Assembly (NCBI GenBank): GCA_009859145.1
Contig: VRVR01000048.1
Location: 177,843-241,842 of the forward strand
Direction of reading: 5' to 3'
DNA: 64,000 nucleotides
Source: Andalucia godoyi And28
Taxonomy: Eukaryota; Protista; Jakobida
The notes below the pieces were generated by a model that saw only the letters and a program-made list of their open reading frames with translations, ran no database searches and was not told the origin of the DNA. A program made the position numbers and the translations under genes. How positions within the stretch are numbered: the stretch's first letter is position 1; each line of letters starts with the position of its first letter. This document shows positions 1,536-59,392 of this stretch, in pieces.

Positions 1536-4500
1536 TAGTCATGGGGCTAACGTAACGCATGTTAGGCTAACGTGCGATGCTGGCCACAGTTAATCTCCGC
1601 TAACTGGATGAGAGTTGACGCTAACGCCAGGCCGCCAGGCGTCAGCATCGGCGACTTGACGCTGTCTCCCGCCAAAATTCGGCGGGAGCACAAACAACAC
1701 AAATCCCCAAGAGGCCGAGACCCTTATCTTTCGGTTTGGACATTTTGACCTTTCCAATTTCCATGATCATTCTTCTCTTTTCGAGAGCAGTCAAGTGTGT
1801 CTGTTTATCAAGATTTGGGTGTGCCTTGAATATTTCATGTCTAAAACTTCAGAATCTGTTGCTGATCTCAGGGAGAAGGCTCGTCAGATTTTAAAGAATC
1901 GCACTGTTTCTCAACGACAAACTGAACCGTTCGCCTGGTCTTTGCCGATAGTGCGTTGGCATGACAAATACCCGCTGGTTCCAGTTGATACTTCTTCGCG
2001 CTCCTCTCCTGTTTGGAATTTTTTTGGTGTTTCCCCCGAAAATGATTCTGAAATGATCCGTGACAGCAAGGAACATCCAGAAGTTTGTTGTGCACTATGC
2101 GTTTTCAGAATGAGCGAGAAGCCGAAGACGTATCCGTATCTAAAACCGACAACGGACAAGCTTCGAGATCATTTAGAATCGAAACATCTTTCGGACTGGA
2201 AAGCTGTTTCCTCGCCGCAAACAGGCGTCGTACCCTCTATCGGCAACTTCTTTGCCAAGCCTCTGACAAATAGTCGCAAAAAGGAACTCCGTGAAGCCAT
2301 TGTTTATATGATCTGCCATGATATTCAACCTTTGTCTGTTGTGGAGAACAAAGGTTTCAAGCAGCTCCTCGAAATGCTTGAGCCAAGATTTCAAATCCCG
2401 GATCGACAGCATCTGTCACAGACGTTGTTGCCTCAGATTGAAAAGGAGATTCATGATTTTGTCGGCGATTCTCTTTCACAGGAGGCATCAGGAGTTTCTC
2501 TGACGACAGATGGATGGTCGTCGAAAAATGGCCATCATTTTGTTGCAGTGACTGCGCATTTTGTGAATGAGGACTTCCAAATTGTGAATGTTCTGTTGAG
2601 ATGCCTGCCCTCAGGGGAATCCACGGACTCCTTGCGCACAAGCCTTTCCAAATGCCTGGAGGATTATGGAATTCGACATGATGCGATCGTTTCAGTAACG
2701 ACTGATAACGCTGACGTGCAAGTGAACGCCGTTGTGAATGCCAGTCTCCCGCATCTTCGTTGTTTCATCCATACTTTGCAATTAGCAGTCCAAGGATCTC
2801 TTAATAACCGAGTGTGTGATTTCGTCGTTGAAAAGGCCAAGAAAATAATGGAATTCTTCCATCGCAGCAATAAGGCAACTCATGAACTGGTAGAGTATCA
2901 AAAACGAGCCGGCATCGCCTCTCCTCTCACAATCAAAACTGAATGTAAGACGCGATGGAACTCTCTTCTGTATGCGCTTGAACGACTGCTGAAACTGAAA
3001 GACTTCATCGAACTTGTGTTGGTTGCGATCAAGCGTGAAGATCTACGGATGAATTCTGTTGAATGGTCGTTCATTGAATCGTTGCTTCCTGCGTTGCGTC
3101 CTTTCGAACAAGCCACCCGTTGGTTCTCCATGAATCAAGAAACGGTTGCAAGCCTCGTTATTCCGACTGTTAGGACGCTATTCAGTCTCTATCCCGATCA
3201 CGATGAAAGAACGATCCGAGAGCTGCAAGCCAACATGAAGACAGTCGACAAAACTGACGTGATCGACGCATCCATCGCTCCACTGGAGTTTATTTTTGTG
3301 GATGAATCTCTGGACTACGTAGGACCAACTTCCAAAAAATCTCGCAAGAGAAAATCGCAGTGTCCGCAAACGGTTGAAGCAGAAGTTTCATCGGTGACTT
3401 CCGAGTTGTGCAATGCAGCACTTTCTTCAATTCGTTTAGCTTTTGGAAATCACCTAAGGGCGCGTTTGAAAACGTTTCTGGATTCATCGATGCTAAAGAT
3501 GTGCACTCTCCTCGACCCGCGAGTCAAAACAGGGTACATGCCATCGAGCGAAAGACGTGAGGTAGAACGGTTGTTATCTGATTTGTTGCGTCGAGAAGCA
3601 GGATTCGGGAATGATCCCGCTCCGTCTCCAAGGAACAATACTCCACACTCTCCATCCGATGCTTCTCAAAATTTCCGGCTCATAGGTCCGATATTTGAGG
3701 ACGACGAGCATGTATCCAAAGATGCTTTTGAGTCAATTGTCACGTCTTATATGAATCATGCATGTCGTTGGCTTGGTGACGATCTTCCAACGTGGTCTGA
3801 AACGTGGAAATCGCTGCAGTCACTGTTTCCTCAAGTTGCTGCCATAGCCCGCAGATACGGAGGTGTTCAAGCATCCAGCGTGAGCAGTGAGCGTGTGTTC
3901 TCCATTTCTGGATACACAATATCTGACCGACGTCGCCGTCTTCATCCGACCACTGTCAACAGTATGATGCTTATCCACGCAAACTACGATTTTTGCAAGA
4001 CGGACCGCAAAAGAAGGGCAGACGCTGGTTGCGAAGATGCGAGGCCTCCTAAACAGCCTGCAATTTCGCCTTCAGATCCCAGTCCATTGCATCGGAAATG
4101 AGTGAAGAGTATTTTCCAAGACAGGTTTCAGTTATTTAATGAATGTGTGTTTTGCAACATCCTGTAATACGTCCAAAAGAGCAAGGAATGAAATCATTGG
4201 ATTATTTAACATTCATGTCCGGAAGTATATATATCTGTGTACAATAATCGTATGGCGCGAAAAATGAGAACGTCGTCTATAATACCCCTTCGCATATATA
4301 TTACGCAGGACCCACGCACGTCATCACGTTCTCACGATAGCTTGATCCGCGACAAACTGTAATTTGTTTTTTCAAGTGAGACATGAGAGCAACAAGTGGA
4401 GAAATGTGCGTGAAAATGCGTAAATCGTAACACATGTGTGGTTGCCCATGTATCTTCGTCCCTGCACAATGTCGACATCCTGATTTTAAATTCGTAAAGC

Positions 4501-6596: not shown

Positions 6597-6952
6597 ATTG
6601 TGACGCCGCCCTTCCGGATTTTGACGCCGCTCCGAAGCTCCTGCTGCACTTGTCCATCATGTTCCCGACTGCTGAAATTCCGAATTCGGCGCTAAAAAAG
6701 ATTTGCAAAAAAGAAAGGCGAGTTACACTGCTGTAGATCCTCTAAGATGATTCGCTTGTCGACAGGAAGTTGATGGGAGCGACAGATAGGGAGGGTTTTC
6801 CTTTCTAATGATTATTATCATGCTATCAACCCACGTATACACATATATGTGTGTATGTATAAAATTTCCAACTGTTGAAAAATTCAGAGCCATTAGCGTC
6901 TTCATCAAGATTGTTCGACTTGCCAAAAAATAAACTTGATTGTTGTTTGCTG

Positions 6953-9900
6953 ATGCGAAGAATCGTGGTGGCTTGCGCACTTATTTTTTTGATCGTACAC
7001 TTGTCCTGTGCTGCTCATACGCTTGCAGGACTGTCGTGTTCAGCAGGCGAGTTTCTGGATAATTCCGCGGCACCGCCAAAGTGCGTGGGCTGTCCTCCGG
7101 GCTCCATCTCGCAGACTGTGAACGCGTCGTCTTGCACACCTTGCTCTCCCGGGTCGTTTTCACCCTCTCTTGGCTCCAGGAACTGCACGCTCTGTCCGCC
7201 GGGCAGTGTGGCGGCTGCCGGATCGCGGAATTGCACAGCCGGGCCAACGCTCGCGTCGCTCGTGTGGTCGACTGGAGCGCTGTCGCCAGAATTTTCGGCA
7301 AATGCGTTCGCGTATCGCTTGGCTGTGAGTGCACCAACGGCAAACGTGTCGGTGGTTCCGGTCGTAAGTGCGGCAGTCCGTGCAGTAGCTGTCATCAAGG
7401 TGAATGGGAGCATCGTGGAGTCTGGAAAGCGGTCGCGGGAGTTGTCGCTGACTGCGGGAGTGAACGTGTCGGTGCCCATTGAGATTTCGGTAAGCAGCGA
7501 CATGTGGACCAGATACACCGTCACGATCGCTAGAGCGACTTTTGGAACAAGCAAGTTGACGGCGCTTGCAGTCTCCGCGGGCACCCTGACTCCCGTATTT
7601 TCTGCGTACGAATTCAGTTATTCAGTTGCAAGTGTTCCACTGACAGCTGCGAGCGTGACGATCACTCCGACCGCACAGTCAGACTATGCAACAATCAAGG
7701 TCAACAACGTGATTGTCGCTTCTCGCAGTGCCTCGAGCCCACTGTTCCTGTCTGCAGCGAGAGCAATTACAGTAACCGTGAATGTTTCCGTACCGGGCAC
7801 AGTGTGGACATCCTACACCGTCTTCCTCCCAAAACTTCAAGTTCTTGCCAACGAGCTCTTTAATCTCTCGGCGTCAGCCGGGACTTGGAATCCGCAGTTT
7901 TCTCCCAAGGTGTTTGTCTATTCGCTGTCCGTTGCTCCGCAGGTTTCGAACATTACATTTTTACCGCTTGGGCTGACGTCTCGAGTGAATGTGACTGTGA
8001 ATGGCACCAGAATCCCGCATGGTAGTGCATCCCAGGCCGTGCCGCTGATGCTGAGCAACACTGTCGTCGTCAACATTTCCGTCGTGGACATTGGAGTGGC
8101 GCCAAAGTCATACATTGTCTCTGTGTTTCGGCAGCCAGCTCCGCGCAACGCAAGTCTTTCCAGACTCGAGCTCAGCGCAGGAGTTCTTTCTCCTGCTTTC
8201 AACTCATTGATTGTTGCTTATACCGTTGTGATGCCAGTCGACACATCGAACATTACGATCCGACCAACATCGTTTAGTCTCAGTACGCGGATATGGGTGA
8301 ACAATTCGTTGGTTGTGTCGGGTTCTCAGTCCGCGGAAATACCAGTTCCTTTTGGTCAACAAATGCTGGTAGTCGTGCGACTCCAAGACGGGGATCTGCT
8401 GCGTTCGTACAACCTCAGCATCCTTCGTCCCGGTGTGACGGTGATCTATCCGCGAAGAGATACTTCCTTTGTCTCTGGTCAGTTCATCTATGTACGCTGG
8501 AACTCGCTGTTATTGTCGAACACAGATGCTCTCCAAGTTGTGTTTTTCAGTCCTCAGAATCGTGCTGGCGACGTTGTTGCCTCTCGTGTGCCGTCCGGAA
8601 TCACCAGCTTTCCGCTCCGCATTCCTCTCGCGATCGTCCCCGGGTCGCAGTTTACAATTGGGGTGCGGTTGAACAACAACACCAGCACTCAGGGCCTTTC
8701 GACAGGAACATTTTCTGTCGTGGCGCAAAATCCCACAAAGTATGTTTATGTGAGCTCACCCGCTCCGTTTACTCGTTTTGGAATCTGGAATGGTCCGTAC
8801 CGAGTCTCGTGGACAATCCTGAACTGCAATGCCCTTGACACCGTCTCAATATCTCTACGCGACACTCTGAACAATTTCGCACTGGTTCAGATGCTGGCGC
8901 AGTACGTTCCCGCGTCGCTGCTGTCTACAGAGCTGAGACTGACTTCCACAACCGGTATTGCTGTGAATTCGGATCGATATGAGATGCACATCACACTGGA
9001 TGGGGCTGCCAGCTCGGATGCAGTACCAGTTTCGTTCGCATTCAGTGCCCCCATCGTTTCTTCATTGTCCATCTTGTACCCTCGAGACTCCACGAGCTGG
9101 GTAGTCGGCGACGTCTGGGGCGTCGAGTGGGCTTCCACTGGTCTGAGTGAGAGTGAGACAGTGTCCTTCTTTCTATATCTTCCAGCCAATGCCTCCCTGC
9201 TGTGGCGACTGTCGACCCCATCTTTGGTGTTCGCTTCCGTCGGCTATCAGGGCCTCAGAGTCACTCAGGGGGGGTCTGTTGCGTTGGGCGGTCCGTACCG
9301 CCTCCGAATGGTTGGTTCCTCCGGCGTGACAGCAGATGCCTTGGCTGATGTGTTCCTTGTCAGTTCTGCCACGCTGCCGTCTGCTACCATTATTTCGGCG
9401 TCTCCCGAGTCAACATCGTCCGTTTCTGTTCTCTTGGGATCTGCAGCGGGTGTCCTGGCATCGTCCAAGATTGTCGAGCTGTTTCGGAATGCTCTCTGTG
9501 CAGGCACTGCGTTGTCGAGTCAGATTCTAGGGCCATCCACATGGACAGCAAGGTTTCGCAATTTATCATCGGGTACCACACATTCCGTACGTGCAAGGTA
9601 CACTTCTATTTCCGGCGGCACTTCTCCTCTTTCAAGTTGTGTGGCCGTTTCGACGAATCTGGCCAGCAGTTTCTTTCCGAGCATTCGACTGTTGCATCCG
9701 ATCGCGGGTCACTCGTACTTTTACACGGAGACGTCCTCCGTCATTCAGGCGCAGTCGATGGATATTCGCGTGCTCGTTTCTGGCCCCCAAAGCGTGTACA
9801 CCGTCTCTGCGATGTTGCAGACAGTGTCAGGAAGGGCGGTGCGCACATTGTTCGCAACATGTTCTACATCCTCCGAGTGTCTGATCGGGTCCGTGAAGTG

Positions 9901-11800
9901 GATGAATGACGTTTCGCTGATGGGCGTGAGGTTTATCGCTGTGTCGTGTGTGAATTTTCCCAGCGTACAGGACAGTGAGGGTATACTGGTATCTGCAGTA
10001 GACATTGTGGCTCACACCACACTTCTTGCTGGGATTCAAAGTTCCCTTGTTGCAGACGTTGCTGTCTCAGCGCCTTCTGGAGTGTCTCTCTTCGTACCTG
10101 CTGGTTCTGTACCCATATCCTCTGCTGGTTCTGTACCGTTGATTTCGGTTACTTCATCCTCCTATCTCCCTTCTAATGTTCCGCCCGGAATGATAAGCAC
10201 GCAGGACGGTGTGACGGCGCTGTCGACTGCGATCAAGGACAACGCTCTTTCTCAGCCGCGCTCTTTTTTGTTCCCCGTGACCTTGTCCGCCTCAATTCCG
10301 CAACGAACGGCTTCTCAACACGAAGCTGCTTCTCAACACGAAGCTGCTTCTCAACACGAAGCTGCTTCGATCCACATGCATGGGGCAACGTGCAGTCCTT
10401 CCGTGTCGGGAACGGAGTGGCGGGCTTTCAGAAGCGAGACTGCAGGCTCCTGGTCGCTTTTGGACAAGCAGCTTGTGCAAATTGATTTGTATTCATGTTC
10501 GTTTTCTGTGCTGTTGCAAGTCTCGAACGCCGAATTTGTCTTGGGAATTCATGCCATGTCTCCTCAATCGAACAACAACAACAGCGACAAGGACGGCGCA
10601 AACCGTGACAATGTTCCTGTAATGATGATTGTCGGAGTCGTTGTCGCTGTGGTTGCTTTGCTCGTAATCTGCTGCTGCTGCCGATCATGCCACAAGAAAG
10701 CGCAAGTCAAGAAGAAAGCTGAGCGGCGAAAAGAGATGCATGCGATTTGTTCTGCAGAGTCTCATTTCTCCTTTGATTCCGTCAATCCAGACGGCACGTA
10801 TGAATTGCAGCCACTCCCATCTGCTCCCTCGCACATCTCCTCTCCTCTGATATTCAGCTTTCCTGCTCCGCTGTCCAGTGCAGGGGAGGCGACGTTCGCA
10901 ACGCAGCAGGAAGCAATCGCGTGGGCCTTGAAAGACGAACCAGCAGAGAATGCCGAGTTGGCTGTTGGCTTGTGCAGATCACTTGGTGTCTTTGTCTTGT
11001 ATGATTTGGCAAAGCGTGGAGCGACATGCACGGATTCTCCTCCAGTGCCGATCATGCCGACGTCTGCATCGAGGCTTGTGAGCGCTACCAGCAGTCGCCG
11101 CTTTGCAGTGGCAGATGGAAACAGCATTTCGTCCTTTGACAAGGAAACACCGTACGCGACGTTTGTTCAGTTTGTAGGGCACACGTCTTCCATTCTCTGC
11201 TTGTCCTTTTCTGCCGACGAGGAGCGCTTGATATCCGGGGCGGAAGATGGATCCGCACGTGTGTGGAGCGTGGCTGCTGGAAGCAACCTGAAGGTCCTGG
11301 GAGGATCCCACGGTCCAGTTCGGGCAGTTGCCATTGGTGCAGTAGCGGTCACGGCCACTGATGACCTGATTGTGAGAGTTTGGGATGTGACGACTGCCCA
11401 GGTGCTAGCTGCTCTCAATGGGCACTCCGCCGCCATCCGGACCGTCGCAGTCTCCACGGACGGAGTCACTGTTGCCACGGGCTCGGATGACTCCACCGTG
11501 CGACTCTGGACGATTTTCCCAACCACCATTTGCAAGCAGATCATGACTGCGCATTGCTCTCCCGTCGTGTGCGTCTCCTTTTCGCCCGATTCGCGGTTCC
11601 TTGCATCTGCCTCGCTCGACAGAACCGTCCGCCTGTGGGATCTCAAGTACTGCTCGCTCGCTGCAGTCATTCTGCCGTTTGTCGGGCGCACGGTAATCGA
11701 GTCTGCCAAATTCGCCTCCAGCACAGTTCTTCTCATCGAGTCCGCCGACAAGCACTCCGTGTTCTTCAGTATTCCCGAGCACCTCGTCGTCCCCGAGTGA
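6953..11800 (+). CDS. Large type-I membrane protein: Cys-rich repeats, 4 cadherin-like beta-sandwiches, Ig-like, FN3 and ZU5-like ectodomain; one TM; cytoplasmic WD40 repeats
   Basis: Signal peptide MRRIVVACALIFLIVHLSCA; CPPG repeats; four LSPxF...Y...NG...Y repeats; FN3-like RNLSSGTTHSVRAR; TM VMMIVGVVVAVVALLVICCCC then a basic stretch; four clear GH...WD repeats. Confidence 0.85.
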   Translation: MRRIVVACALIFLIVHLSCAAHTLAGLSCSAGEFLDNSAAPPKCVGCPPGSISQTVNASSCTPCSPGSFSPSLGSRNCTLCPPGSVAAAGSRNCTAGPTLASLVWSTGALSPEFSANAFAYRLAVSAPTANVSVVPVVSAAVRAVAVIKVNGSIVESGKRSRELSLTAGVNVSVPIEISVSSDMWTRYTVTIARATFGTSKLTALAVSAGTLTPVFSAYEFSYSVASVPLTAASVTITPTAQSDYATIKVNNVIVASRSASSPLFLSAARAITVTVNVSVPGTVWTSYTVFLPKLQVLANELFNLSASAGTWNPQFSPKVFVYSLSVAPQVSNITFLPLGLTSRVNVTVNGTRIPHGSASQAVPLMLSNTVVVNISVVDIGVAPKSYIVSVFRQPAPRNASLSRLELSAGVLSPAFNSLIVAYTVVMPVDTSNITIRPTSFSLSTRIWVNNSLVVSGSQSAEIPVPFGQQMLVVVRLQDGDLLRSYNLSILRPGVTVIYPRRDTSFVSGQFIYVRWNSLLLSNTDALQVVFFSPQNRAGDVVASRVPSGITSFPLRIPLAIVPGSQFTIGVRLNNNTSTQGLSTGTFSVVAQNPTKYVYVSSPAPFTRFGIWNGPYRVSWTILNCNALDTVSISLRDTLNNFALVQMLAQYVPASLLSTELRLTSTTGIAVNSDRYEMHITLDGAASSDAVPVSFAFSAPIVSSLSILYPRDSTSWVVGDVWGVEWASTGLSESETVSFFLYLPANASLLWRLSTPSLVFASVGYQGLRVTQGGSVALGGPYRLRMVGSSGVTADALADVFLVSSATLPSATIISASPESTSSVSVLLGSAAGVLASSKIVELFRNALCAGTALSSQILGPSTWTARFRNLSSGTTHSVRARYTSISGGTSPLSSCVAVSTNLASSFFPSIRLLHPIAGHSYFYTETSSVIQAQSMDIRVLVSGPQSVYTVSAMLQTVSGRAVRTLFATCSTSSECLIGSVKWMNDVSLMGVRFIAVSCVNFPSVQDSEGILVSAVDIVAHTTLLAGIQSSLVADVAVSAPSGVSLFVPAGSVPISSAGSVPLISVTSSSYLPSNVPPGMISTQDGVTALSTAIKDNALSQPRSFLFPVTLSASIPQRTASQHEAASQHEAASQHEAASIHMHGATCSPSVSGTEWRAFRSETAGSWSLLDKQLVQIDLYSCSFSVLLQVSNAEFVLGIHAMSPQSNNNNSDKDGANRDNVPVMMIVGVVVAVVALLVICCCCRSCHKKAQVKKKAERRKEMHAICSAESHFSFDSVNPDGTYELQPLPSAPSHISSPLIFSFPAPLSSAGEATFATQQEAIAWALKDEPAENAELAVGLCRSLGVFVLYDLAKRGATCTDSPPVPIMPTSASRLVSATSSRRFAVADGNSISSFDKETPYATFVQFVGHTSSILCLSFSADEERLISGAEDGSARVWSVAAGSNLKVLGGSHGPVRAVAIGAVAVTATDDLIVRVWDVTTAQVLAALNGHSAAIRTVAVSTDGVTVATGSDDSTVRLWTIFPTTICKQIMTAHCSPVVCVSFSPDSRFLASASLDRTVRLWDLKYCSLAAVILPFVGRTVIESAKFASSTVLLIESADKHSVFFSIPEHLVVPE
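10310..10368 (+). repeat. 18-bp coding tandem repeat x3 (encoding ASQHEA units)
   Basis: GCTTCTCAACACGAAGCT repeated three times exactly, in frame. Confidence 0.95.
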
Positions 11801-11866
11801 TCCAATTACCACGACACATGGGCGCGATGGGATACGTACGAGACGGGAAATAACCAACCCCTCTCT

Positions 11867-11925
11867 CCCTCCCTCCCTCCCTCCCTCCCTCCAACCAAAC
11901 CAAACCAAACCAAACCAAACCAAAC
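11867..11925. repeat. (CCCT)n + (CCAAA)n microsatellite spacer
   Basis: Directly visible. Confidence 0.9.
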
Positions 11926-12160
11926 ACACAAACAAACACAATGCTTACGTAATTACCGTTTCGCTCGTCCCATCGTGCGTCCTAGTCGTAGTCGGTTCCA
12001 AAACTGGAAATAAGATGCTGGCGTTTCGGTGTTTCCTCTGTTTCCTCTTTTTGTTTTGTTTTCGTAGTGATTGTTTATCCAGCTGCGTATTGGAAAAGTA
12101 AGCATTTCCCCTCCCGCTCCTTTCTTTCTTGGACTTTGCGGACTTTGTGGGGTGCTGTCA

Positions 12161-13009
12161 ATGTTTTGTGGGAGGCTTGTGAATCGTTCGCTGGCCAGAA
12201 TTCCTTTGCCTCCGTTGCATACCGTGTTCATGTCGTCGTCTGTGCCTACGCATTCGCGGAAAAAGGGTCGGCAGCAATGCCCGATCTCACTGTCGATATC
12301 CAACTCGACGCTGCCGGAAGCGACGTTTCATGACCATCCGAAAGACTACGAGGCCATTTTAAGCGCGCTGCAAAGCAGGCAAGGCTACAAATACATTGAA
12401 AGCGCCGCGGCTGAATTCAGCACTCATTTGCCGAGTGCGAAGAAGTATCATTTCATGGATCCAAAGCTGCATCCGTCGCTGTTTCGGTTTGACTACTTTG
12501 TCAGAGAAGACGGAAGAGTCCTTGACGGCCTAGTCATGTTCAACGAAAAAGCAGAAGGGTTTCCGGGCTGTGTGCACGGCGGAGTGTCCTCTGCGCTGCT
12601 GGATGACGCGCTTGGATTTCTTGGGTTCTACACCATCAAGGCGCTTGTCACCACCGAACTGGACGTCCGTTTTCTCAATCTCGTCAAGCTCCAAACAGTG
12701 CACTACTTGTACGTCGAGGCGGTTCCCGCGGTCGATGCTCATCGGTACGACCCACTGTACCCGCCATCCTTGTCATCGTCATCGTCATCGTCATCGTCGT
12801 CGTGTGCTGTGAGTGAGCCGGAGCGGTCCAAAAAGGATGCAGACGGAGGCGGGAAGCCAAAGGTCGAGTATGGATTCATGGGAAAGAAACCGCTGTTCCT
12901 TGGCGGACTTGTCGATCCTTTTGGTTTGGAGTGCATTTGGGCCCGCGGAAGGTTCCTGGATATTCGACACAAGGCCTCGAAGCCCATTCACCATCCCTCC
13001 AAACTATAG
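12161..13009 (+). CDS. Hotdog-fold acyl-CoA thioesterase (THEM4/PaaI-like), probably mitochondrial
   Basis: FNEKAEGFPGCVHGGVSSALLDDALG motif; VTTELDVRF; Arg/Ser-rich N-terminus from ATG 12161. Confidence 0.85.
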   Translation: MFCGRLVNRSLARIPLPPLHTVFMSSSVPTHSRKKGRQQCPISLSISNSTLPEATFHDHPKDYEAILSALQSRQGYKYIESAAAEFSTHLPSAKKYHFMDPKLHPSLFRFDYFVREDGRVLDGLVMFNEKAEGFPGCVHGGVSSALLDDALGFLGFYTIKALVTTELDVRFLNLVKLQTVHYLYVEAVPAVDAHRYDPLYPPSLSSSSSSSSSSCAVSEPERSKKDADGGGKPKVEYGFMGKKPLFLGGLVDPFGLECIWARGRFLDIRHKASKPIHHPSKL

Positions 13010-16642: not shown

Positions 16643-18100
16643 ATGCCTCCAAAGAAGAAGGGTGGGAAGAAGAAGGATTCGCGGCCTTCGTCTGCGGCTG
16701 TTGATGGTGGGGAGTTGTCGGGTGGACCTACAGTGGAGTCTCTGACGGCTCAGCTGCAGCAGATGGTGGCGGAGAAGGAGCAGGAGCAGCGCGAGCGGAA
16801 CTTTTATCAGCTTGAGAGAGACAAGGTGACTGGGTTTTGGGAGATCACGAAGAAGGAGCTTGATGAGTTGCGGTCTCAGCTGCGGAACAGAGAGCGTCAT
16901 GTGGAGGAACAGGAGGAGCGGCATCAGATTGAGATGAAGGTGTACAAGCAAAAAGTTCGTCATCTGCTCTATGAGCACAAGGTGACGATGGACAAGGTGA
17001 AGACGGACTCCGAGGTGTCGTCCAAGGTCGCGTCGGATGAGCATCGGTCCAAAGAGATTGAGCTTAAAGGAGAAAAGAGGTCGCTGAAGGAGGAGATGAA
17101 GGAGCAGGAGCTGTCGCATGAGGAGATGATCAGGAAGTTGCGCCAGGATCACGATAAGAACATCACGAAACTGAGACAGGAGTTTGAGCGCGAGGTTCGT
17201 GAGATCCAGAACAAGTACGAAAAGAAGATGAAGACGCTCCGAGAGGATCTGGAGCTGCGTCGCAAGGCAGAAGTGCACGAGATTGAAGAGCGTAAGAACG
17301 AGCATATCCAAGAGCTGATGTCGAAGCATGCAAAGGCGTTTGCAGAGATTAAGGCGTACTACAATGACATTACGACGAATAACCTGGATCTGATCCGGTC
17401 GCTCAAGGAGGAAGTCGAGGTCATGAAGAAGAAGGAGGCCAAGAACGAGAAGCTCATGTTTGAGATTGCACAGGAAAACAAGAGGCTATCGGAACCGCTG
17501 ACCAATGCGCTCAACCAGGTTGAACAGCTGCGCTCGGAACTTGCAAACTACCAGAAGGACAAGATGAGCCTCAAAAACTCAAAGGCAAGACTGAAGCTCC
17601 TGGAGTCGCAAGTCAAGTCTCTTTCTTGGGAACACGAGGTTCTGCAGCAGCGGTTTTCCAAGGTCTCGGGCGAACGCGACGAGCTCTACGGAAAGTTTGA
17701 AAAGGCCTTGCTCGATGTCCAACAACGCGCTGGATTCCGAAATCTGCTGCTTGAACGCAAGCTCGAGTCCATCTCCGAGCAGCTTGAAAAGAAGGAGGCT
17801 CAGCTCGCCGAGGTCCTTCGAGCCGCGAACCTCGATCCGTCTGTCCTGGGCTCCGTCACCGCCAAGCTGGAAGAAATTCTCGAGGGCAAGAACAGACTTA
17901 TCCGCGATATGCAGTACGAAATCGCAAAGCTCTCCAAGGCACAGCACGACATGGTCCACGTCTTTGAAGGAAAGCTCCGCGAGTTTGGCATTCCCCCCGA
18001 GGAAGTCGGCTTCCAACCCGTGTTGCCGTCCGCCGACATCCAAGCGGACTTGCCACGACCCGGCGGCGGTCCTGCCGGCCTCGTTGCCGCCTCCAGTTAA
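16643..18100 (+). CDS. GAS8: Dynein regulatory complex subunit 4 (growth arrest-specific 8)
   Basis: MPPKKKG start; EREERNFYQLERDK, HQIEMKVYKQKVRHLLYEH, IKAYYNDITTNNLDLIRSLK and FGIPPEEVGFQP motifs. Confidence 0.97.
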   Translation: MPPKKKGGKKKDSRPSSAAVDGGELSGGPTVESLTAQLQQMVAEKEQEQRERNFYQLERDKVTGFWEITKKELDELRSQLRNRERHVEEQEERHQIEMKVYKQKVRHLLYEHKVTMDKVKTDSEVSSKVASDEHRSKEIELKGEKRSLKEEMKEQELSHEEMIRKLRQDHDKNITKLRQEFEREVREIQNKYEKKMKTLREDLELRRKAEVHEIEERKNEHIQELMSKHAKAFAEIKAYYNDITTNNLDLIRSLKEEVEVMKKKEAKNEKLMFEIAQENKRLSEPLTNALNQVEQLRSELANYQKDKMSLKNSKARLKLLESQVKSLSWEHEVLQQRFSKVSGERDELYGKFEKALLDVQQRAGFRNLLLERKLESISEQLEKKEAQLAEVLRAANLDPSVLGSVTAKLEEILEGKNRLIRDMQYEIAKLSKAQHDMVHVFEGKLREFGIPPEEVGFQPVLPSADIQADLPRPGGGPAGLVAASS

Positions 18101-22554: not shown

Positions 22555-24144
22555 TCATGCCAGAAGGTCTTTTGCAAACGTCTCATCAGCAAGCTGCACC
22601 TTGAACTTTGCGAGATCTACCAACTGTTTCACAGCCGAGATCTCAGCGCGTCTCCGAGACAGCGCAGATTCTGCTTCAGCAACTCTCCTCTTCGCAGCCA
22701 GCGTCTCACTCCGGGACTTGACTCGAATGTCATCATAGCATCTGGTCAGCGCGGCATGCTGCTCTGTACTTTCTGGTGTTGGCAGCTCCTTACCTTCTGC
22801 CAGCATGGCTGCGTACTCTGCGGCAGTTGCAGCAAGCTTGTTGTGCGATGGATGGGTTTCTGTCGCCGGTGGAGACAGTGGTGTGTAGGCCTCCATGGCC
22901 GCTGCTTGCGCGGTCGCAGCATTCGCCGCCATTGCTGCAATGTTGGATGAAGAAGCCGATGCCGTCAGGGTTGGTCCCGATGACGGAATCACCGCCATTC
23001 CGAATCCATGGTGCTGCTGCAGCATCGGAATCGGCACGCCCATGGTCATTGGAATTGGCAAGTGCACAGGGATTGGCATTGGCACTGGCATGGACATGGG
23101 GACGGGAACGGGAATCGGCACAGAAACCGATTGCACACCAGACGCAGGGATTCTGAATGGGTTGGCTCCAGTACCAGAACCACTGCTGCTGCTGCTGTTG
23201 CCACTCACAACCGTGTTATTCGGGGACGTAGCCACCGACTCGGCAAGGTTTCCAGAACTGCTGGTCATTGGAATTCCCAGCAAGGAAGACAGCGTTACTG
23301 TCCCCGAGCCAGATGGTGGGAGTCCAGTTGGACCTGCAGTGGAGACAGAAGCGGAGCCAGCCGCAGCCCCTGATGCGGCAGCAGAGGCTGCGGACGGCGC
23401 CGGGACAGCGGCTGTCGAGCTTGGAATGGGCTGGCTAAAAAATGGATTGGATGCAGAGCTATAGGCCGCCGTGGAGGACAACGGAGTGCTGGGAGCCGAC
23501 AATCCGAGCGACGACGACGACGACGACGACGAAGAAGAAGAAGAGGAAGTGGGTCCATACAAAGAAGCCTCGGATCGATCTCGATCTCGATCTCGATCAC
23601 GGTCTCGGTCGCGATCTCGGTTATGATGATGTGAGTAATGGGAAGAAGAGTGGTAATCACGATCGTACCTGTGATCTCTGTCGTATCTGCCTCCATGGTG
23701 TCCATGGTCTCGATAGTGGTAGTCGCGGTCCCGAGAGTCGCGATAGTCACCGCGGTCTCTGTCTCTATAATCACGATAATCGCGGTCTCTGTCTCTATCT
23801 CGGTCGCGGTCGCGATAGAACAATGACGACCCAGCGTGCCCATCTTTGTTCGCTGCGCTCAAGCTTGAAGCAGACGGCTGAGCAGAAGCATTCGACGCAG
23901 ACAGTCCACTCGCAGTCGCAGTCGCAGTCGCAGTCCCACTCCCAGTAGCACTCGCAGAACCACCAGCTGTCGTCACGACGGCCGTAGAAGGAGTCGAAGC
24001 AGTCCCAAGTGCCGTAGTTGCACTGCTTGGAGCGGTGCTCACATTCGACGACGCGGTGGACGGAGGATGATCGCGTGCATAGTAAGGACGGTCTCTGCTG
24101 TCTCTACTGTCTCTGTGGTCACGAAACTCCCGATCTCTCTCCAT
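22555..24144 (-). CDS. Hypothetical low-complexity protein (RD dipeptide tracts, Ser/Ala-rich, C-terminal coiled coil)
   Basis: 529-aa ATG-initiated ORF between other genes; RD repeats, poly-S, amphipathic helical C-terminus. Confidence 0.7.
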   Translation of the reverse strand: MERDREFRDHRDSRDSRDRPYYARDHPPSTASSNVSTAPSSATTALGTASTPSTAVVTTAGGSASATGSGTATATATASGLSASNASAQPSASSLSAANKDGHAGSSLFYRDRDRDRDRDRDYRDYRDRDRGDYRDSRDRDYHYRDHGHHGGRYDRDHRYDRDYHSSSHYSHHHNRDRDRDRDRDRDRDRSEASLYGPTSSSSSSSSSSSSSLGLSAPSTPLSSTAAYSSASNPFFSQPIPSSTAAVPAPSAASAAASGAAAGSASVSTAGPTGLPPSGSGTVTLSSLLGIPMTSSSGNLAESVATSPNNTVVSGNSSSSSGSGTGANPFRIPASGVQSVSVPIPVPVPMSMPVPMPIPVHLPIPMTMGVPIPMLQQHHGFGMAVIPSSGPTLTASASSSNIAAMAANAATAQAAAMEAYTPLSPPATETHPSHNKLAATAAEYAAMLAEGKELPTPESTEQHAALTRCYDDIRVKSRSETLAAKRRVAEAESALSRRRAEISAVKQLVDLAKFKVQLADETFAKDLLA

Positions 24145-49293: not shown

Positions 49294-52200
49294 TTACTTC
49301 ACCAAGAACGTTTGCATCTTTCCTTTCCCCTTGATATCGACGTCTCCGCGTTCTTCACAGTCGACTGAGGACCACACCAATTCATACGTACTACGTGTGA
49401 TCTGAATTCTTCCCGGGACTCCACTTGACTCCATCCGGGAAGCAATATTGACCGCATCGCCAATGCAATCATAGACAAATTTGCTTTTTCCAATGACGGC
49501 TCCGATGACTGGACCGGAGTTGACGCCGGCACGTATTTCTATGCTGGTAGAGTGCTGCAAGTTGTACTGCTTGACCATGTCGATCACGTCCTTTAAAAAG
49601 GAAATCATAGCAACAGCGTGGTCGTGTTTGCGTTCGAACAGACCGGCGGCCCCAAAAAAGCAATCTCCGATGAGCTTGATCTTTTCAATCTTGTGTTTTG
49701 TGCACAAAATATCGATGTTTGAGAAAATGTCACTCAGCATCTCAACCAAATCGCGAGGTGTCATGTGCGACGACAATTCCGTAAACTTGACAATGTCGAC
49801 AAAACAAAGACTGACGCATTGATACTGGTCATATATGGGATGTTCCCCGTCTTTTAGACGTGTGGCAATACTGCGGGGCAGTATGTTCAGCAACAAGTCG
49901 TCGGATCGTTGACGTTCTGTACGAAGCAACAGCTCAGTCTTCTCTCCCACAGTCAAATCACGCACAAATGCTGCGTAAAAAATCTCGTCCTTGATCTTAT
50001 ACGACGACAGCGATAGCTGGACAGGGAACGTCTGCTGATCTGGCAGCATTCCATCCGCACGCAAGGACAGCGTGCCTTTCTTCCGGACGGCTTCGTCCAG
50101 TGCTTTTGGAATGTCGTACGGGAAATTGTCCGAGAAGGAACGCAAGTTGCACACAAGAGTGTCAAAAGATCGCCCGATGACATTTCCGTTTTCCGAGCAT
50201 CTGAATATCTGATTGGCAGACGGAGAAGCGTGTTCAACAAATCCTTTCGAGTTCAGCTCCAATATGCCGTCCACTGAAGCCGCAAGAACCGACCGTGTCC
50301 TCAGCTCTGCTTCCTCCACGGCATCTTGGAACATGTTCTCACTCATTCGTGTTCCGTGAGTGCGCACAAAAGATTCCAATGCGGGAACCTTCTCGACAAC
50401 CGGAACAGGTATCATCGTTAGCATCTTCCGATACTGGTGAATTTCCTTCCACAAATGCGCTTGAAGGAACTGGGAGACGACAAGAGCTACCGCGATGACA
50501 CCCACACATACTCCGAATACTGGACCGATGGAACTCAATGCAAACGTTACTGTACTGGGAGTTTCGCTCACAAAAATCGCCTTCGACTGTGTCAGAAGAG
50601 GTCCCAAATAAAGAGACTCGATGTTGAGCAAATCGCGATAGGTTTGCAACTGGAATGTGAGTTGCGAATCCGGAAGCAGCAAAAGGACATTGGCCAAGTT
50701 TAGGTAGGCGGACATGATTCCATCAAGACCGAGACATGCTACGTTGAGCGTATCGTTGCATCGTCGGTCAAACAGCAGACTATCTTGTGCTGCAGAATGA
50801 CCAACGGATGGTGGTGTTTCAAACTTTGCTGATCCGTACTTGACAGCATCGTGAATTTCGGACAGCTGCTGAATTCCTGCACTCAGCTGAGGTCGCATGC
50901 TCGCCCTGCCTCCGTTCAGCAGCCGAGCATCATCCCGAATTAGTTCCGTTGCCAAGTAGTTGATTCTTTGCGAAAACGACCGTCGAGACCCTGCATAGTT
51001 GATCTGTGCAGACTTCGAGTATGATGAAAAACTTGCAGCCAAGCAAAAACCGCACATGACGATGATCAGCGAGCAAATCACAATGATGAATGTCAGGAAA
51101 ATTAAAGTCACTCGTGTGGTGGCAGACGTGGAAGAAGCCGCTGCACCACGTAACAGAATATCCGCACTAGAGCCCTTCTTGCCATTGCCCGCATGAATTG
51201 CAGTGCGACATTTTTGAACAATCGTGGAAACATCGGTCTTTGGAACTAGCAAAAACAGTCGCGAGATGGCTTTCCGCTCGCGAAGAATTGATCTCATGGC
51301 CCGAACGTAGAGTAGCAAAATCAACAAGATGGGCAGGCCAACCGCAAGCGCAGCAAGTACCCACAAGGTGATTCGATCTTGAGCAGCAGAGTCACGATAA
51401 TAAGCGACGTAAGCATAGACAAGACTCCACATACCCGTGAGCAAAGAATATGGACCGTTTTCAACAATAGAACGGAAATCTGTGTTGTTCCCGGTCCACA
51501 CGTTGCTGGAAAAGAATGTAGCGTTGAACGATGCCACATTCCTAATGCTTCGTACGTAGGAGTTGTACATTTCCCACCGCGATTGCATGACAACAGTGTG
51601 ATCTTGTGTTGAAGCGCTCCACAGATAGAAAGGAACGTCTCTCTTTTGCCATTCTGCTATCAACGAGTCGACGCCGAAAGTGCTCGCAAACAGAGAAGAA
51701 GCTGCTGTTTCGATATCGGTAGCAGTTTGTGTTAACTTTGTAATTGATGCGGAGAACGAGGTTCCCGTGTACCAGCCTTTGGCAACCGCTTCGCAAAGCG
51801 CAGTCATGTACGCCGCATTCACGGACGGCATACGGGTCCCTCCTGCATTGGCAACCATGTCCCCCTTATCCGACCGTATCGTCGATTTTCCAATGACATA
51901 CACTGTGATGCAAATCGCAAGCAGGCACAGCAAACTCACGAACATTGCAAACGAAATGTGATACAAGGATTTTGGCTTCTTGACGAGAAGGCTCTTCATG
52001 TCTTCCGCAATTTCGGCAGCAGAAGATGCCGAGTCCGGATCTGCATTCCCCTCAGATACCGAATCAAAGGCGACAGACCCCTTGCCTACGTCCATTTCCG
52101 TATCCATCGTCTCTGGCTCCACAAGCTCGCCAACCTGGACTCTTTTCTTCCGCGGCTTCATCCGAATCGCCTTCGGCGTAGAGGAGGAGCTGCGGAGACC

Positions 52201-54399
52201 GACAGCAGATGCAACATCACTAGCTCCATTGCTCACATCGGACTTCATCGATAGTGCATCCGACCCTTCAGCGCTGCCGCCAGTCTGCATGCGAGGCGCT
52301 GCGGGCAACGCAGAAAGTTCCAGCGCACCCGTTGCTTCTGACGCCATTTTGAACCGCGTGTCCCGCCTCTTCTTTCTCAGCATGTCTCCATTCTCACCTT
52401 CGTGGCGATCCGCCAGAGCAATGTAATATCGAGCTTCATCAAATGAAAGTGGATCGAGATCTCGGAGAAATTGAGCGTATGCACGAAGAACAGTCGGAGA
52501 AGACGGAAACCTTTGCAAAAGAGACCCAAGCAGATTTCGTGCAGCAATTTCCTCGCTTTCGATTCGGCTCACAGCAGCAGGCAACTGCTTGAGAGGAACA
52601 TTGTCGATCAGCAACAACTCCCAAAAAGCAGCAACCAGTTGGAGAGCTTGGATGCGATGGCGATTTGTCTTCTTCAAAAGAAGCATTAGTTCCGAACTTC
52701 CGCTTTGGTCCAGCGAGCGTCGTGCGTCATCCAAAGACGCCCAGAACACCTTGAATAACATCGAATTCTGTTCCAAACTGTCTGCGGTCGTTTTCAGTGC
52801 CTCTTGTACAGAGATCATCCCAAAAAGAGACGAGCGGACGGATGAGACAGTCAGAAAAAACTCGCATGCGCTCAGCTTCGTCCAGGGCGAGCATCCTTCT
52901 TGTTGCATGATTGTTTCGATGAGCGTCTTGCAATGTTCCAGAGTGTCAGACGCTCCTGACCGCTGTGAATGAATGCTACCGGAACTGATCCAGTAAACAA
53001 GTGCGGACATCTCGTACCACCGTAGAGGTATGAGTGGCCTGTGAATGTCCTCATCATTCGAAGCTGTAGACGTTGATGCACATTCAACATCGTCCGTTGG
53101 AGAAAACGACGGCGAGGAAGGTTGATTGGCCTCGGATGACTCACTGTTCCAAACCTTTGAGGAATACCGACTTCCTTCATTCGAGAGCGTGGAGGAAGCG
53201 CACTTCTTCTTCAAGTAATGAATTCGCTTTCGAAGCAACAGTTCTGACAATGCAACCAGAAATGATGCTGATAAGAGTATCATCCCAAATGAGTACGATG
53301 AGAAGTCAAACGAAGCAAGACTGGCGCTGATCAGGGCTGCTCGAGAGTATAGCGACACACGCTGACCCGCCCTCCACTTGTAAGGGCAGAAGTACAGGAC
53401 AACCATCCACACGGTCAGCGAGACGATGAGAGAAAATGTTGAGAAAAAGAATTGGTTGAAGGAAAAATACAGTATCGATCCGCACACAAACTTCTCCCCG
53501 ACGGTGACGGGCTGAATGAGATACGGAAGAGAAAGATCCAACAGAGAATATTCGAGCTTCGCGAACCCAAAAGAAACAATAAACGCCTCCGCGAATCTTA
53601 CTATCAGCATGCCGACGAAGAACGTTATGGCAAAGCAAATGTACAAGAGCTGAACGGAACTTACGCAGTGAATTGCGTTGCCAGTCTGTGCCAGGGTATT
53701 TCCAGCCCAGTCCATCAAGACGGAATCCAAGGGATTTGATGTCATGGTGCAATTCATCATTTGGAAAAACGCGAACATTGCAGGAAGCGTGATGATTGAG
53801 CGTCCACTTGAAACCAAGATGAAAAGAAACGAGAGCAAGGTTCGGGATATTGGGCTTCGATTCTGGTGCTGACGCTGAATCAGCAGCGTCAAGACCAGTT
53901 CAATGACTAAGAGACTTCCAAACAAGAACAAACGCACAATCATGTCGACGTAATTGTGATTCAGACTCTCCCCGAAAAACAGCAAGCGCGACAAGACCGT
54001 GAGCCAATTGGCAGCAGAAGAACCGGGAGAGGCATAGAGAAGAGCCAACGGCGCATTGATCAGCAATGCAAACATCTGCAAATACTCGATAATCCACAGG
54101 CACACAGAAAATGGAACAGCAAAAACATTTTTTCGTGCTACGTATGGCGTGGAGTTGAGCGTCCCGAAAGCGGCTCCAAACGTAATGAACACTTTCTGCC
54201 AGGGTGCAGAAAACTGAAGATGATCCATAAGGCTTCGTCCAGAGGAGGTGGACCACGACGTGAACGAATCGTGCCTCGACTGACCGTCTCCATCAGAAAT
54301 GTCTTCGCTGGTGTCCTCCACGTGAGCAGACTGCAAAGGCGTGGTTCGACGAAAATTAGGGAATCTGCCTCCAAACGTCGTGTCCGTCGTGTTGTGCAT
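49294..54399 (-). CDS. Multi-pass class III adenylate cyclase with two NarX/PilJ-like sensor domains and a PAS domain
   Basis: C-terminal CFVDIVKFT, KIKLIGDC, YDCIGDAVNIASRMES; PAS (ASVDGILELNSKG...FPVQLSLS); N-terminal TM bundle; two N-x-A-G-x-x-R motifs, each after a TM. Confidence 0.9.
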   Translation of the reverse strand: MHNTTDTTFGGRFPNFRRTTPLQSAHVEDTSEDISDGDGQSRHDSFTSWSTSSGRSLMDHLQFSAPWQKVFITFGAAFGTLNSTPYVARKNVFAVPFSVCLWIIEYLQMFALLINAPLALLYASPGSSAANWLTVLSRLLFFGESLNHNYVDMIVRLFLFGSLLVIELVLTLLIQRQHQNRSPISRTLLSFLFILVSSGRSIITLPAMFAFFQMMNCTMTSNPLDSVLMDWAGNTLAQTGNAIHCVSSVQLLYICFAITFFVGMLIVRFAEAFIVSFGFAKLEYSLLDLSLPYLIQPVTVGEKFVCGSILYFSFNQFFFSTFSLIVSLTVWMVVLYFCPYKWRAGQRVSLYSRAALISASLASFDFSSYSFGMILLSASFLVALSELLLRKRIHYLKKKCASSTLSNEGSRYSSKVWNSESSEANQPSSPSFSPTDDVECASTSTASNDEDIHRPLIPLRWYEMSALVYWISSGSIHSQRSGASDTLEHCKTLIETIMQQEGCSPWTKLSACEFFLTVSSVRSSLFGMISVQEALKTTADSLEQNSMLFKVFWASLDDARRSLDQSGSSELMLLLKKTNRHRIQALQLVAAFWELLLIDNVPLKQLPAAVSRIESEEIAARNLLGSLLQRFPSSPTVLRAYAQFLRDLDPLSFDEARYYIALADRHEGENGDMLRKKRRDTRFKMASEATGALELSALPAAPRMQTGGSAEGSDALSMKSDVSNGASDVASAVGLRSSSSTPKAIRMKPRKKRVQVGELVEPETMDTEMDVGKGSVAFDSVSEGNADPDSASSAAEIAEDMKSLLVKKPKSLYHISFAMFVSLLCLLAICITVYVIGKSTIRSDKGDMVANAGGTRMPSVNAAYMTALCEAVAKGWYTGTSFSASITKLTQTATDIETAASSLFASTFGVDSLIAEWQKRDVPFYLWSASTQDHTVVMQSRWEMYNSYVRSIRNVASFNATFFSSNVWTGNNTDFRSIVENGPYSLLTGMWSLVYAYVAYYRDSAAQDRITLWVLAALAVGLPILLILLLYVRAMRSILRERKAISRLFLLVPKTDVSTIVQKCRTAIHAGNGKKGSSADILLRGAAASSTSATTRVTLIFLTFIIVICSLIIVMCGFCLAASFSSYSKSAQINYAGSRRSFSQRINYLATELIRDDARLLNGGRASMRPQLSAGIQQLSEIHDAVKYGSAKFETPPSVGHSAAQDSLLFDRRCNDTLNVACLGLDGIMSAYLNLANVLLLLPDSQLTFQLQTYRDLLNIESLYLGPLLTQSKAIFVSETPSTVTFALSSIGPVFGVCVGVIAVALVVSQFLQAHLWKEIHQYRKMLTMIPVPVVEKVPALESFVRTHGTRMSENMFQDAVEEAELRTRSVLAASVDGILELNSKGFVEHASPSANQIFRCSENGNVIGRSFDTLVCNLRSFSDNFPYDIPKALDEAVRKKGTLSLRADGMLPDQQTFPVQLSLSSYKIKDEIFYAAFVRDLTVGEKTELLLRTERQRSDDLLLNILPRSIATRLKDGEHPIYDQYQCVSLCFVDIVKFTELSSHMTPRDLVEMLSDIFSNIDILCTKHKIEKIKLIGDCFFGAAGLFERKHDHAVAMISFLKDVIDMVKQYNLQHSTSIEIRAGVNSGPVIGAVIGKSKFVYDCIGDAVNIASRMESSGVPGRIQITRSTYELVWSSVDCEERGDVDIKGKGKMQTFLVK

Positions 54400-56173
54400 G
54401 TTAGGGAGGCTTCGCTGAGTAAACAATCCGAACGAAACACGAGGTTCGGCAAAAAATGAAAGAAGAAAGAATTCAACGAACAAAGGAAACAACGAGGCTT
54501 TTTTGGGCGACGAAATCGCACTCCCCACCACCGCTCATCATCACTCCGGCTCCTGCTCTTTCGCATCCCCTTGGTTCGAGGAAAGTGATCGCAAGCACTG
54601 GTATCGTGTGTGTGCAAAGCTGGCATCCAAAGGCGATCAGAGGAGAAGCAGGGGCGGCCCCGCATGATCAGACGCGGCAACTAGAGCCACCGTAATTGGA
54701 ATCAAATTCCTTTTTTGCACCCAAACCTCCGCTTCCGCTTTTGTCCGCCGGTGCACAGTCGGAGACGGATGGAACGTTTCAAAGCCTGTTTGCTCGCAAA
54801 GTCGGATGGGTTGATGGTTCGCAATTCCGGGAGCCGCACTGCAGGCGGAGTGGCCAGTTCCCGCTTCACAGCTTCCGTTTTATCTTTGAACGGTGTGCTC
54901 ATTCTTGCCTTTTCTGCTGGAAAGAAATGTATGTTTTTGAGGCCAAACGTTGACTTTTCGGAGTCTTTGGGGAAAATGCTTGATGCTAGATGTACGGTAT
55001 TTTACTTCGCAAGGCCTGTGACCGCGTCATTTCTGAATGAGAATGTCCTATAGCGGTTGCTTTGTTGTGGAACAACTGTAATGGCATCGGCTTGAGTGAT
55101 CTCCCTTTTTTGAACCGGTGACAACGGCCTTCTATTCTGAGCAAGTACACATTGTTGCAGCTTTAAACAATGGTGAGCGTCCTGAACTAGAGACGCACGA
55201 ACAACCAGTTCTACTGTCGCCTGGAGGGTTTTGCCATCTCACTGCTCTGCATCCGATGTCCTCATACATAGAGAACATTCAGCGCGCTTCTTGATGTTAT
55301 TCACACTATGGCATCGGGTTCGAAGTTCATTGGCCGTCTACACGACGTAGGAACTGGCTCATCGTGCTCGGTTGGATTGCTGAAAGTCTCTTGCAGCACA
55401 TGTTTCCAGACTTGGACTATCCAACTATGCGTCATGTCAAAGATCTATTTTGCCATTTTCACAGCAACTTCATCAAGAACCGGAGAAACGCGCAATTGCC
55501 TATGCGGTTCCTTTGTAGTCATCGAAGCAATGCCGCCTCGTGCACACTTCTTTTCTGCCTTTCTCAGTTTGCGGTTCTGTCATTTCCAGGTGGTGCTGTG
55601 GAGGGCCTTTTGCAGTCGGCTGCTTACTCCTCAATTCATGTTCAAGCAAAGCGATCGTGGGAAGCTCTTCGAAAAGAATACATGATCAAATGTCTACGAC
55701 CTTTGACAGAGCGTTGATAACGTCTTGTCTGTTACCGGATGCTGCTCTTGACGTAGTGAACGTGATTGTAGATCGCGCGGTGGAAGCAGGCTTGTTTTCT
55801 CTTGTCACGCAGCTTGCTACACGTATTGTCATTAATGTACAGCGCATTAGAACATGCATCACTGTCATTTCCTTGGTGAGCGAGCAGTTTTCTAACCATC
55901 AAAGCGATGACAGAGCTTTGCAAATTAAGATCACAAGAAATGAAAAACGAGCGCAAGGACGAGAGCAAACGAGACGAGCGACAGGAACGAAACCTAGTTT
56001 TACAATAATCGAAAGTCGACAAATGACGAGCCGCGGCAGTGGTCGGGCCAGCCGCTGCCTGGGCTCGCTTTTCTTTCCTTCTCTTACCAGTTGAGAAAAG
56101 GTAAATAAAGACGCGTGCTTAACGCAAGTCACTGTTCTTTCGTTGTTTTACTGGCTGATAAAAGCTACTGCGG

Positions 56174-59166: not shown

Positions 59167-59202
<36 letters not shown>

Positions 59203-59392
59203 CGAAATGAAACATCCGATGCAGAGTTTGCGGCCTTCGAAGCGCCCCCGTTTGATCTCGAATTCCGATGATGAAGATGATGATGAAGAAAACGAGAACG
59301 GAAATAGTGAAGACATCGCGTCTTTCGCCAAACGATTGTCCATCACTGCTTTTTCTCATCCAGCCCTTCTTGACAGAGATGATTCCGACTGA
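56174..59392 (+). CDS. Hypothetical 1072-aa protein, LRR-like central region, Asp-rich tail, putative NLS
   Basis: ATG-initiated uninterrupted ORF; LETLLI, VETLAL and LTCLRV-type periodicity; poly-D tract; PSKRPRL. Confidence 0.75.
59095..59202 (+). repeat. (GAT)n coding poly-Asp tract
   Basis: Directly visible. Confidence 0.9.

Follow-up and report, generated by a model that had tools for sequence, protein, structure and literature searches.

A predicted single-pass receptor with its own WD40 domain, probably encoded by a single gene of the jakobid Andalucia godoyi

Can a single polypeptide carry both the modules of a cell-surface adhesin and, on the other side of one membrane helix, the type of WD40 platform that other receptors recruit as a separate protein? 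The question is raised by a locus at 6953–11800 in a stretch of 64,000 nucleotides from the jakobid Andalucia godoyi And28 (GenBank assembly GCA_009859145.1, contig VRVR01000048.1, positions 177,843–241,842 of the forward strand), which we refer to as the window and in which all coordinates are given. An initial annotation, made from the sequence without database searches, read this locus as a single-pass receptor comprising a signal peptide, Cys-rich repeats, four cadherin-like beta-sandwiches, three immunoglobulin (Ig)-like units, FN3 and ZU5-like segments, one transmembrane (TM) helix with a CCCC cluster and a cytoplasmic tail with WD40 repeats. We find one long reading frame with frame-specific coding signal, with recognizable domains on both sides of a single TM helix, and lean towards the view that the product is an adhesion or recognition receptor.

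The reading frame and its coding signal

The forward strand holds one long open reading frame (ORF) at 6875–11800. Its earliest ATG, at 6953, gives a complete coding sequence (6953–11800, +) of 1615 amino acids (aa) and a stop codon, an assignment made from the ORF call and codon usage that needs no intron. Codon usage was scored as log-odds trained on 11 other ORFs of the window, each with a Pfam match. Frame 0 is positive in ten of 11 segments of the ORF, the exception being the 46-codon TM segment at about −0.01, and frames 1 and 2 are negative in all segments, the cytoplasmic linker included. Flanking intergenic DNA scores from −0.04 to −0.22. A chance ORF can be dismissed because the frame stays open for 1615 codons and the scores are frame-specific.

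A linker joins the ectodomain and TM helix to the WD40 repeats. Over aa 1260–1400 frame 0 scores +0.13 and +0.07, whereas frames 1 and 2 score −0.13 to −0.19. The 156 linker codons contain no in-frame stop, an outcome with a probability of about 1e-3 by chance given the local base composition. Neither a repeat nor a break in composition was found at the junction of ectodomain and tail. The G+C content of third codon positions (GC3) is 0.51–0.59 in the ectodomain and 0.65–0.76 in the WD40 part. Since the linker has coding signal and lacks a stop, one continuous gene is the best reading, and the sequence indicates that 6953–11800 is most likely one gene.

Two further candidates were rejected. 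Downstream exons that might finish the WD40 propeller find no place, as the stop at 11800 closes the frame and microsatellites, then a separate ORF, come next. Bacterial contamination is at odds with the eukaryotic genes on both sides of the locus on the same contig, the eukaryotic signal peptide, the N-glycosylation sequons and the host-like codon usage. The microsatellites, (CCCT)n and (AACCA)n, occupy 11859–11937, immediately 3′ of the stop codon, and the next ORF, at 12071–13009, has no Pfam family match.

Topology and domain composition

Residues 1–21 (6953–7015, +) read as a typical signal peptide, both in the hydrophobicity scan and by direct inspection: MRR is followed by a 14-residue hydrophobic core, IVVACALIFLIVHL, and then by SCA/AH. 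The TM helix at aa 1222–1243 (10616–10681, +), with a Kyte–Doolittle hydrophobicity of up to 3.27, ends in CCCC. There is no other strong TM-like stretch in the protein, windows at aa 130–150 peaking at 1.9–2.0. After CCCC comes RSCHKKAQVKKKAERRK, with nine Lys or Arg in 17 residues. All 21 NxS/T sequons are N-terminal of the helix and none falls in the 372-residue tail, where about six would be expected at the density of the ectodomain (Poisson probability of zero about 0.002). The signal peptide, the single helix, the positive-inside rule and the sidedness of the sequons lead us to a type I glycoprotein with a cytosolic C-terminus. The indicators fit an ectodomain displayed outside the cell and a WD40 domain in the cytosol, and each element of the single-pass topology in the initial annotation, from signal peptide to CCCC-tipped helix and cytoplasmic tail, is borne out. 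The CCCC cluster is a candidate palmitoylation site, and to judge by the motif the protein is probably palmitoylated there.

The domains were sought with Pfam, and relatives of the protein in three larger searches, which covered 5.8 billion proteins (word-indexed), 1.84 billion representatives (exhaustive HMMER) and metagenomes (one scan). The ectodomain opens with a Cys-rich module of CxxC repeats (Ephrin_rec_like or TNFR-like) at aa 28–95 (7034–7237, +). It scores 28.9 bits with PF07699 (Ephrin_rec_like), for which the cut-off is 23.1, and falls below the cut-offs of TNFR_c6 (23.4 versus 29.4) and NCD3G (26.6 versus 38.9). The spacing of its cysteines is C-x14-C-x2-C-x13-C-x2-C-x13-C-x2-C-x12-C. 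We note that this N-terminus is 41–50% identical to abundant ENA metagenome proteins, P0088 and P0113 (1577–1816 aa). In proteins of this type RCC1 repeats occur together with Ephrin_rec_like, TNFR and NCD3G modules, and one cluster of them has 302 members.

Four cadherin-like beta-sandwich domains (PF12733) follow at aa 100–493 (7250–8431, +), assigned from Pfam and from the identities between units. The family matches with 101.9 bits, compared with a cut-off of 24.2, in four stretches over aa ~100–493; the units are 27–40% identical to one another and 37–52% identical to those of the matching proteins in the databases. Among the matches listed for this part, all that carry a source name are bacterial and most are type IX secretion system (T9SS) or 'gliding motility' proteins. 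Segment scans of aa 100–495 at E ≤ 1 returned PF12733 only, with no classical cadherin EC repeats (PF00028); nor is the tail, which holds the WD40 domain, the catenin-binding cytoplasmic tail of a cadherin.

The three Ig-like units were harder to place. They lie at aa 495–581, 597–690 and 705–795 (8435–9337, +), and a direct Pfam comparison gives only a weak match to Kre9_KNH (PF10342; 14.8 bits, below the cut-off of 24.6). The exhaustive HMMER search with aa 494–1400 returned six weak matches, every one of them a Kre9_KNH repeat protein; the source names carried by three of these are a bacterium, an archaeon and a sequencing run. A profile iterated on the six homologues picks out three units and no others, with values of 4e-23 to 4e-17. 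Because all the homologues found carry PF10342 and the iterated profile scores three units, we identify these domains provisionally, at the level of sequence profiles, as Kre9/KNH-like.

The matches support a closest relationship of the identifiable ectodomain modules to prokaryotic surface proteins, and given this closeness to bacterial proteins it is plausible that they were acquired by gene transfer. The Cys-rich repeats, the four cadherin-like units together with their mainly prokaryotic surface character, and the three Ig-like units had all been read correctly from the sequence. This is not the situation for the membrane-proximal part of the ectodomain, aa 796–1221 (9338–10615, +), which has no detectable family and holds the proposed 'FN3' and 'ZU5-like' segments and an Asn-rich stalk. 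Neither name could be sustained: at E ≤ 10 there is no PF00041 match for 'FN3' (aa ~805–905) and no PF00791 match for 'ZU5-like' (aa ~1025–1215), and neither segment has a PDB sequence match. A ZU5 domain would in any case be atypical in an extracellular position. The ectodomain also contains a perfect 18-bp tandem repeat of 3.3 copies (10310–10368, +) that encodes (ASQHEA)n, probably a recently expanded loop of variable length.

On the cytoplasmic side, a basic stop-transfer segment and a Ser/Pro-rich linker, with positive coding score, extend over aa 1244–1367 (10682–11053, +). The linker includes the tetrapeptide PSAP at aa 1289–1292 (10817–10828), of the type that binds TSG101 of the endosomal sorting complex required for transport (ESCRT) I, and SHFSF at aa 1270–1274; in a Ser/Pro-rich segment both may be due to chance.

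The WD40 beta-propeller, with six modelled blades, occupies aa 1368–1606 (11054–11770, +) and was delineated with PF00400, a repeat profile and an AlphaFold model. The tail scores 108.3 bits with PF00400 (cut-off 27). A repeat profile of our own, built from the listed WD40 matches (mostly bacterial where a source is named), detects four significant units at aa 1406–1563, at 5e-5 to 4e-15, and none on either side. The best PDB sequence matches of the tail are to highly regular WD40 proteins, namely 2ymu, the designed WRAP-T and Tako8, Fbw7, PkwA and WDR5.

AlphaFold was applied to aa 1320–1615 with a hand-built alignment of 24 rows, including 23 WD40 fragments that are not orthologous to the receptor. 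The model has a mean predicted local distance difference test score (pLDDT) of 79 and a predicted template-modelling score of 0.78. The pLDDT is 94–97 over the four canonical blades and ~70–85 over one added blade per side, and the 24 strands make up six blades at aa 1368–1606. With four repeats found by the profile and one degenerate blade placed on each side of them by the model, the earlier count of four clear WD40 repeats and perhaps five or six in all holds good, as does the statement that the protein is neither a kinase nor a cyclase, families that are absent from every Pfam scan.

In Foldseek the model superposes on seven-bladed propellers over 238–245 columns at 2.2–2.8 Å. For two of these, PkwA (5yzv), whose WD40 domain we take to be seven-bladed, and nvWrap-T (7bie), the fit is at 2.2–2.5 Å, and the overlap corresponds to about six of the seven blades in each structure. 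Two of the WD40 matches are titled seven-bladed, and ODA16 and LIS1 are also among the top matches. Our model suggests that the tail would have seven-fold geometry with one blade position unfilled. Where the missing blade might come from can be considered in three ways. Residues 1320–1367 have a pLDDT below 50, and to the eye LAVGLCRSLGVFVLYDLAKRG looks like the B-turn-C portion of a seventh, very degenerate WD unit; on direct reading the same region includes VFVLYDLAKRG, similar to a WD C-strand. A very degenerate seventh blade may be present at aa ~1325–1366. On the evidence of the model, a seventh blade supplied in cis by these residues, or donated by a partner as in Sec13, is at least as likely as completion by dimerization, the suggestion made at the outset, which we regard as speculative.

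The search for relatives of the whole protein gave repeat-level matches alone, and none of the 120 listed combines PF12733 with WD40. An exact-sequence look-up in protein collections found no record of the receptor. With aa 494–1400 the word-indexed search had zero matches, and the exhaustive search produced no relatives beyond the Kre9/KNH-domain proteins already described. A tblastn search inside the window detected no paralogue, and the metagenome scan returned two generic WD40 matches and nothing else. Literature searches turned up no account of a type I receptor to which a cytoplasmic WD40 domain is fused, and nothing relevant on eukaryotic PF12733 proteins. No protein with the whole architecture, characterised or not, came up in the word-indexed, exhaustive and metagenome searches, in agreement with the initial view that it is unfamiliar among characterised receptors. 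The sequence establishes the component families (PF00400, PF12733 and PF07699) but does not assign the protein to any receptor family. We consider that the locus represents a real and unusual domain architecture, probably in a single gene, of an under-sampled protist.

Function and rival explanations

What might such a protein do? We lean towards a heavily N-glycosylated cell-surface protein of type I that would act as a receptor in adhesion or recognition and in which the tail is a built-in WD40 scaffold. The ectodomain would form a rod-like string, with the Cys-rich module as a cap followed by the four cadherin-like domains, the three Kre9/KNH-like Ig domains and the ~420 unassigned residues. 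It would be anchored by the single TM helix with its probably palmitoylated CCCC cluster, and a flexible linker of ~80–125 residues would hold the WD40 propeller beneath the membrane. The ectodomain would bind a particulate or surface ligand, for example bacterial prey, a substrate or a cell coat, and the face of the WD40 domain would serve as a docking platform by which cytoskeletal, endocytic or phagocytic, or signalling partners are brought to the engaged receptor. Since jakobids are bacterivorous flagellates, a role in adhesion or prey recognition is a reasonable inference.

Several points weigh against this proposal. The searches yielded neither an orthologue nor a paralogue, and conservation therefore gives no support for function. 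For the ~420 residues of aa 796–1221 there is no Pfam or PDB sequence match and no homologue in the exhaustive HMMER search, and fine-segment scans of the cytoplasmic linker, taken to E ≤ 10, likewise gave no Pfam or PDB match. AlphaFold with the single sequence of the tail gives a pLDDT of 35, and the non-orthologous alignment used for the better model biases it towards canonical geometry. Finally, WD40 domains are generic, and the class of partner is therefore unreadable from the sequence.

The alternative that survives best is a structural anchor between membrane and cytoskeleton, with the ectodomain embedded in a surface coat or engaged in adhesion of the flagellum or feeding groove and the WD40 domain permanently docked on part of the cytoskeleton, for example microtubular roots or the axoneme. 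A long, modular, sequon-rich ectodomain with no enzymatic domain would suit this role. Acylation-type motifs target proteins to raft or flagellar membrane in other Discoba, and CCCC fits such targeting. The axoneme- or dynein-associated ODA16 and LIS1 among the structural matches point the same way, though they are simply very canonical WD40 proteins. The structural matches are generic, however, and nothing links this WD40 domain to a cytoskeletal partner; we judge such an anchor unlikely, if still worth keeping in mind.

A sorting or trafficking receptor of the endomembrane system would bind cargo in the lumen and engage a coat or ESCRT through the WD40 domain and the PSAP of the linker. WD40 domains of coat proteins do bind sorting signals, and a Snf7 (ESCRT-III) gene in the window indicates that the machinery is present. 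Nevertheless, a motif of four residues could arise by chance in a linker rich in Ser and Pro, adhesin-type modules are typical of exposed surfaces, and we know of no sorting receptor with a WD40 domain of its own. We regard this explanation as improbable. To a similar degree we doubt that the gene is a young lineage-specific fusion that has yet to settle on a function, made up in part of bacterial domains that arrived by gene transfer, such that its novelty is evolutionary noise. The failure of every search to find an orthologue is in line with this idea, as are the prokaryotic affinities of the cadherin-like and Kre9/KNH units, the perfect 18-bp repeat within the coding region and a hAT transposase ORF 2.8 kb upstream. 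The missing orthologues carry little weight, since relatives of the organism are so sparsely sampled, and selection is favoured by a 4.8-kb frame that has stayed open with host-like codon usage, by the intact state of both signal peptide and TM helix and by sequons confined strictly to one side.

An artefact of the gene model or assembly, whether two genes (one for ectodomain and TM helix, the other for a soluble WD40 protein starting at, for example, Met1368) or a chimeric join in the contig, would draw on the internal Met codons at aa 1262 and 1368 and the rise in GC3 towards the WD40 part, but is very improbable in view of the stop-free linker, the frame-0 score there set against negative other frames and intergenic DNA, and a junction devoid of repeat or composition break.

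The adhesion or recognition receptor that we favour has a more ambitious form. Here the adhesin-type ectodomain, derived at least partly from prey-type bacteria through gene transfer, would be coupled to a deliberately incomplete six-bladed propeller that is completed by ligand-driven clustering or dimerization or by a strand from a partner, and the protein would define a new class of receptor that signals by propeller assembly and not through an enzyme. We can give this idea very little credence at present.

Genomic setting and comparison with known systems

The neighbouring genes are eukaryotic and include those for the flagellar proteins DRC4/GAS8 and DNAAF5, THADA, a TPR-PAS-cyclase, phospholipase D, Snf7, a class I tRNA synthetase (Trp/Tyr family) and Rsm22. 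DRC4/GAS8 (16643–18100, +) is 84% and 76% identical to two metagenome proteins, the former from JGI, and its best named match is from the jakobid Stygiella incarcerata with 69% identity, which puts the window in or near Jakobida; the protein collections have no record of this exact DRC4. The layout of the window, which is compact, intron-poor and of mixed orientation, agrees with the described A. godoyi genome (PMC7050145).

The hAT-type transposase ORF (1795–4101, +; 768 aa) is intact and carries Dimer_Tnp_hAT and DUF659; between it and the receptor gene lie ~2.8 kb of ORF-poor DNA of lower G+C content. Capture by a transposon was considered and rejected, a search having revealed no terminal inverted repeats that tie this ORF to the receptor gene. 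At 49294–54531 (−) a protein of 1744 aa combines TmcB-type TPR and PAS domains with a C-terminal class III adenylate/guanylate cyclase, and is itself a large receptor-type cyclase. The phospholipase D gene (59692–61404, −) has a GC3 of 0.36, compared with 0.53–0.71 in other genes, and a codon score near zero, and the 56–62 kb region around it has a lower G+C content of 0.42–0.45. Two long ORFs have no Pfam match at E ≤ 0.001, 56174–59392 (+; 1072 aa) and 22555–24144 (−; 528 aa). Rfam and tRNA scans of the window found nothing.

Both halves of the predicted protein have parallels elsewhere. Bacterial PF12733 array proteins, for example those sorted by T9SS in Bacteroidota, likewise carry the domain in tandem and are presumed to be surface-exposed and adhesive; units of the matching proteins, bacterial where a source is named, are 37–52% identical to those described here. 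In the named bacterial proteins the C-terminus is mostly a T9SS sorting domain, however, and they lack a signal peptide of eukaryotic type, a TM helix and a tail in the cytosol. The three Ig-like units probably share the profile of Kre9/KNH-like proteins (PF10342), but the setting there is a secreted or glycosylphosphatidylinositol-anchored cell-wall protein and here it would be a receptor.

For the tail, the closest functional analogy is to pairs of a receptor and a soluble WD40 adaptor, such as RACK1 with integrin or receptor tails, FAN with TNF-R55, and STRAP or TRIP-1 with TGF-beta receptors. Each of these places a WD40 platform beneath a single-pass receptor, on the cytosolic side of the membrane, and the likeness to the TNF receptor extends to the Cys-rich module, TNFR- or ephrin-receptor-like, with which the present ectodomain opens. 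The difference is that the WD40 domain is a separate polypeptide in those pairs and a covalent fusion here. The PDB sequence and Foldseek matches revealed no sequence-specific tie to RACK1 or FAN beyond the generic WD40 fold.

Two further comparisons are instructive. Sec13 and Seh1 are open six-bladed propellers that receive a blade in trans from Nup145C, Sec31, Sec16 or Nup85. The monomer model of the tail similarly has six blades and room for one more, but there is no specific sequence similarity, and the openness of the tail is suggested at the level of a model in which a seventh blade could be supplied in cis. SCAP, which is polytopic, and Sec12/PREB, which is tail-anchored, are membrane proteins that carry a WD40 or propeller domain in the cytosol. 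Like the predicted receptor they hold a propeller at the cytosolic face of the membrane within their own polypeptide; they differ in topology, in having no large adhesin-like ectodomain and in functioning in the endoplasmic reticulum and Golgi, and no homology to them is detectable.

The weight of the observation is limited by the fact that it concerns a single orphan gene with a generic interaction domain. If it is real and is expressed, the protein would amount to a 'Rosetta-stone' fusion made by nature, in which a single-pass surface receptor is joined to the kind of WD40 scaffold that elsewhere is recruited in trans. It comes from a lineage of deep-branching bacterivorous flagellates whose cell-surface biology is essentially unknown, and would offer a handle on how such protists recognize particles and substrates, on the co-option of bacterial surface modules into eukaryotic receptors and on whether open propellers can act as switchable docking sites.

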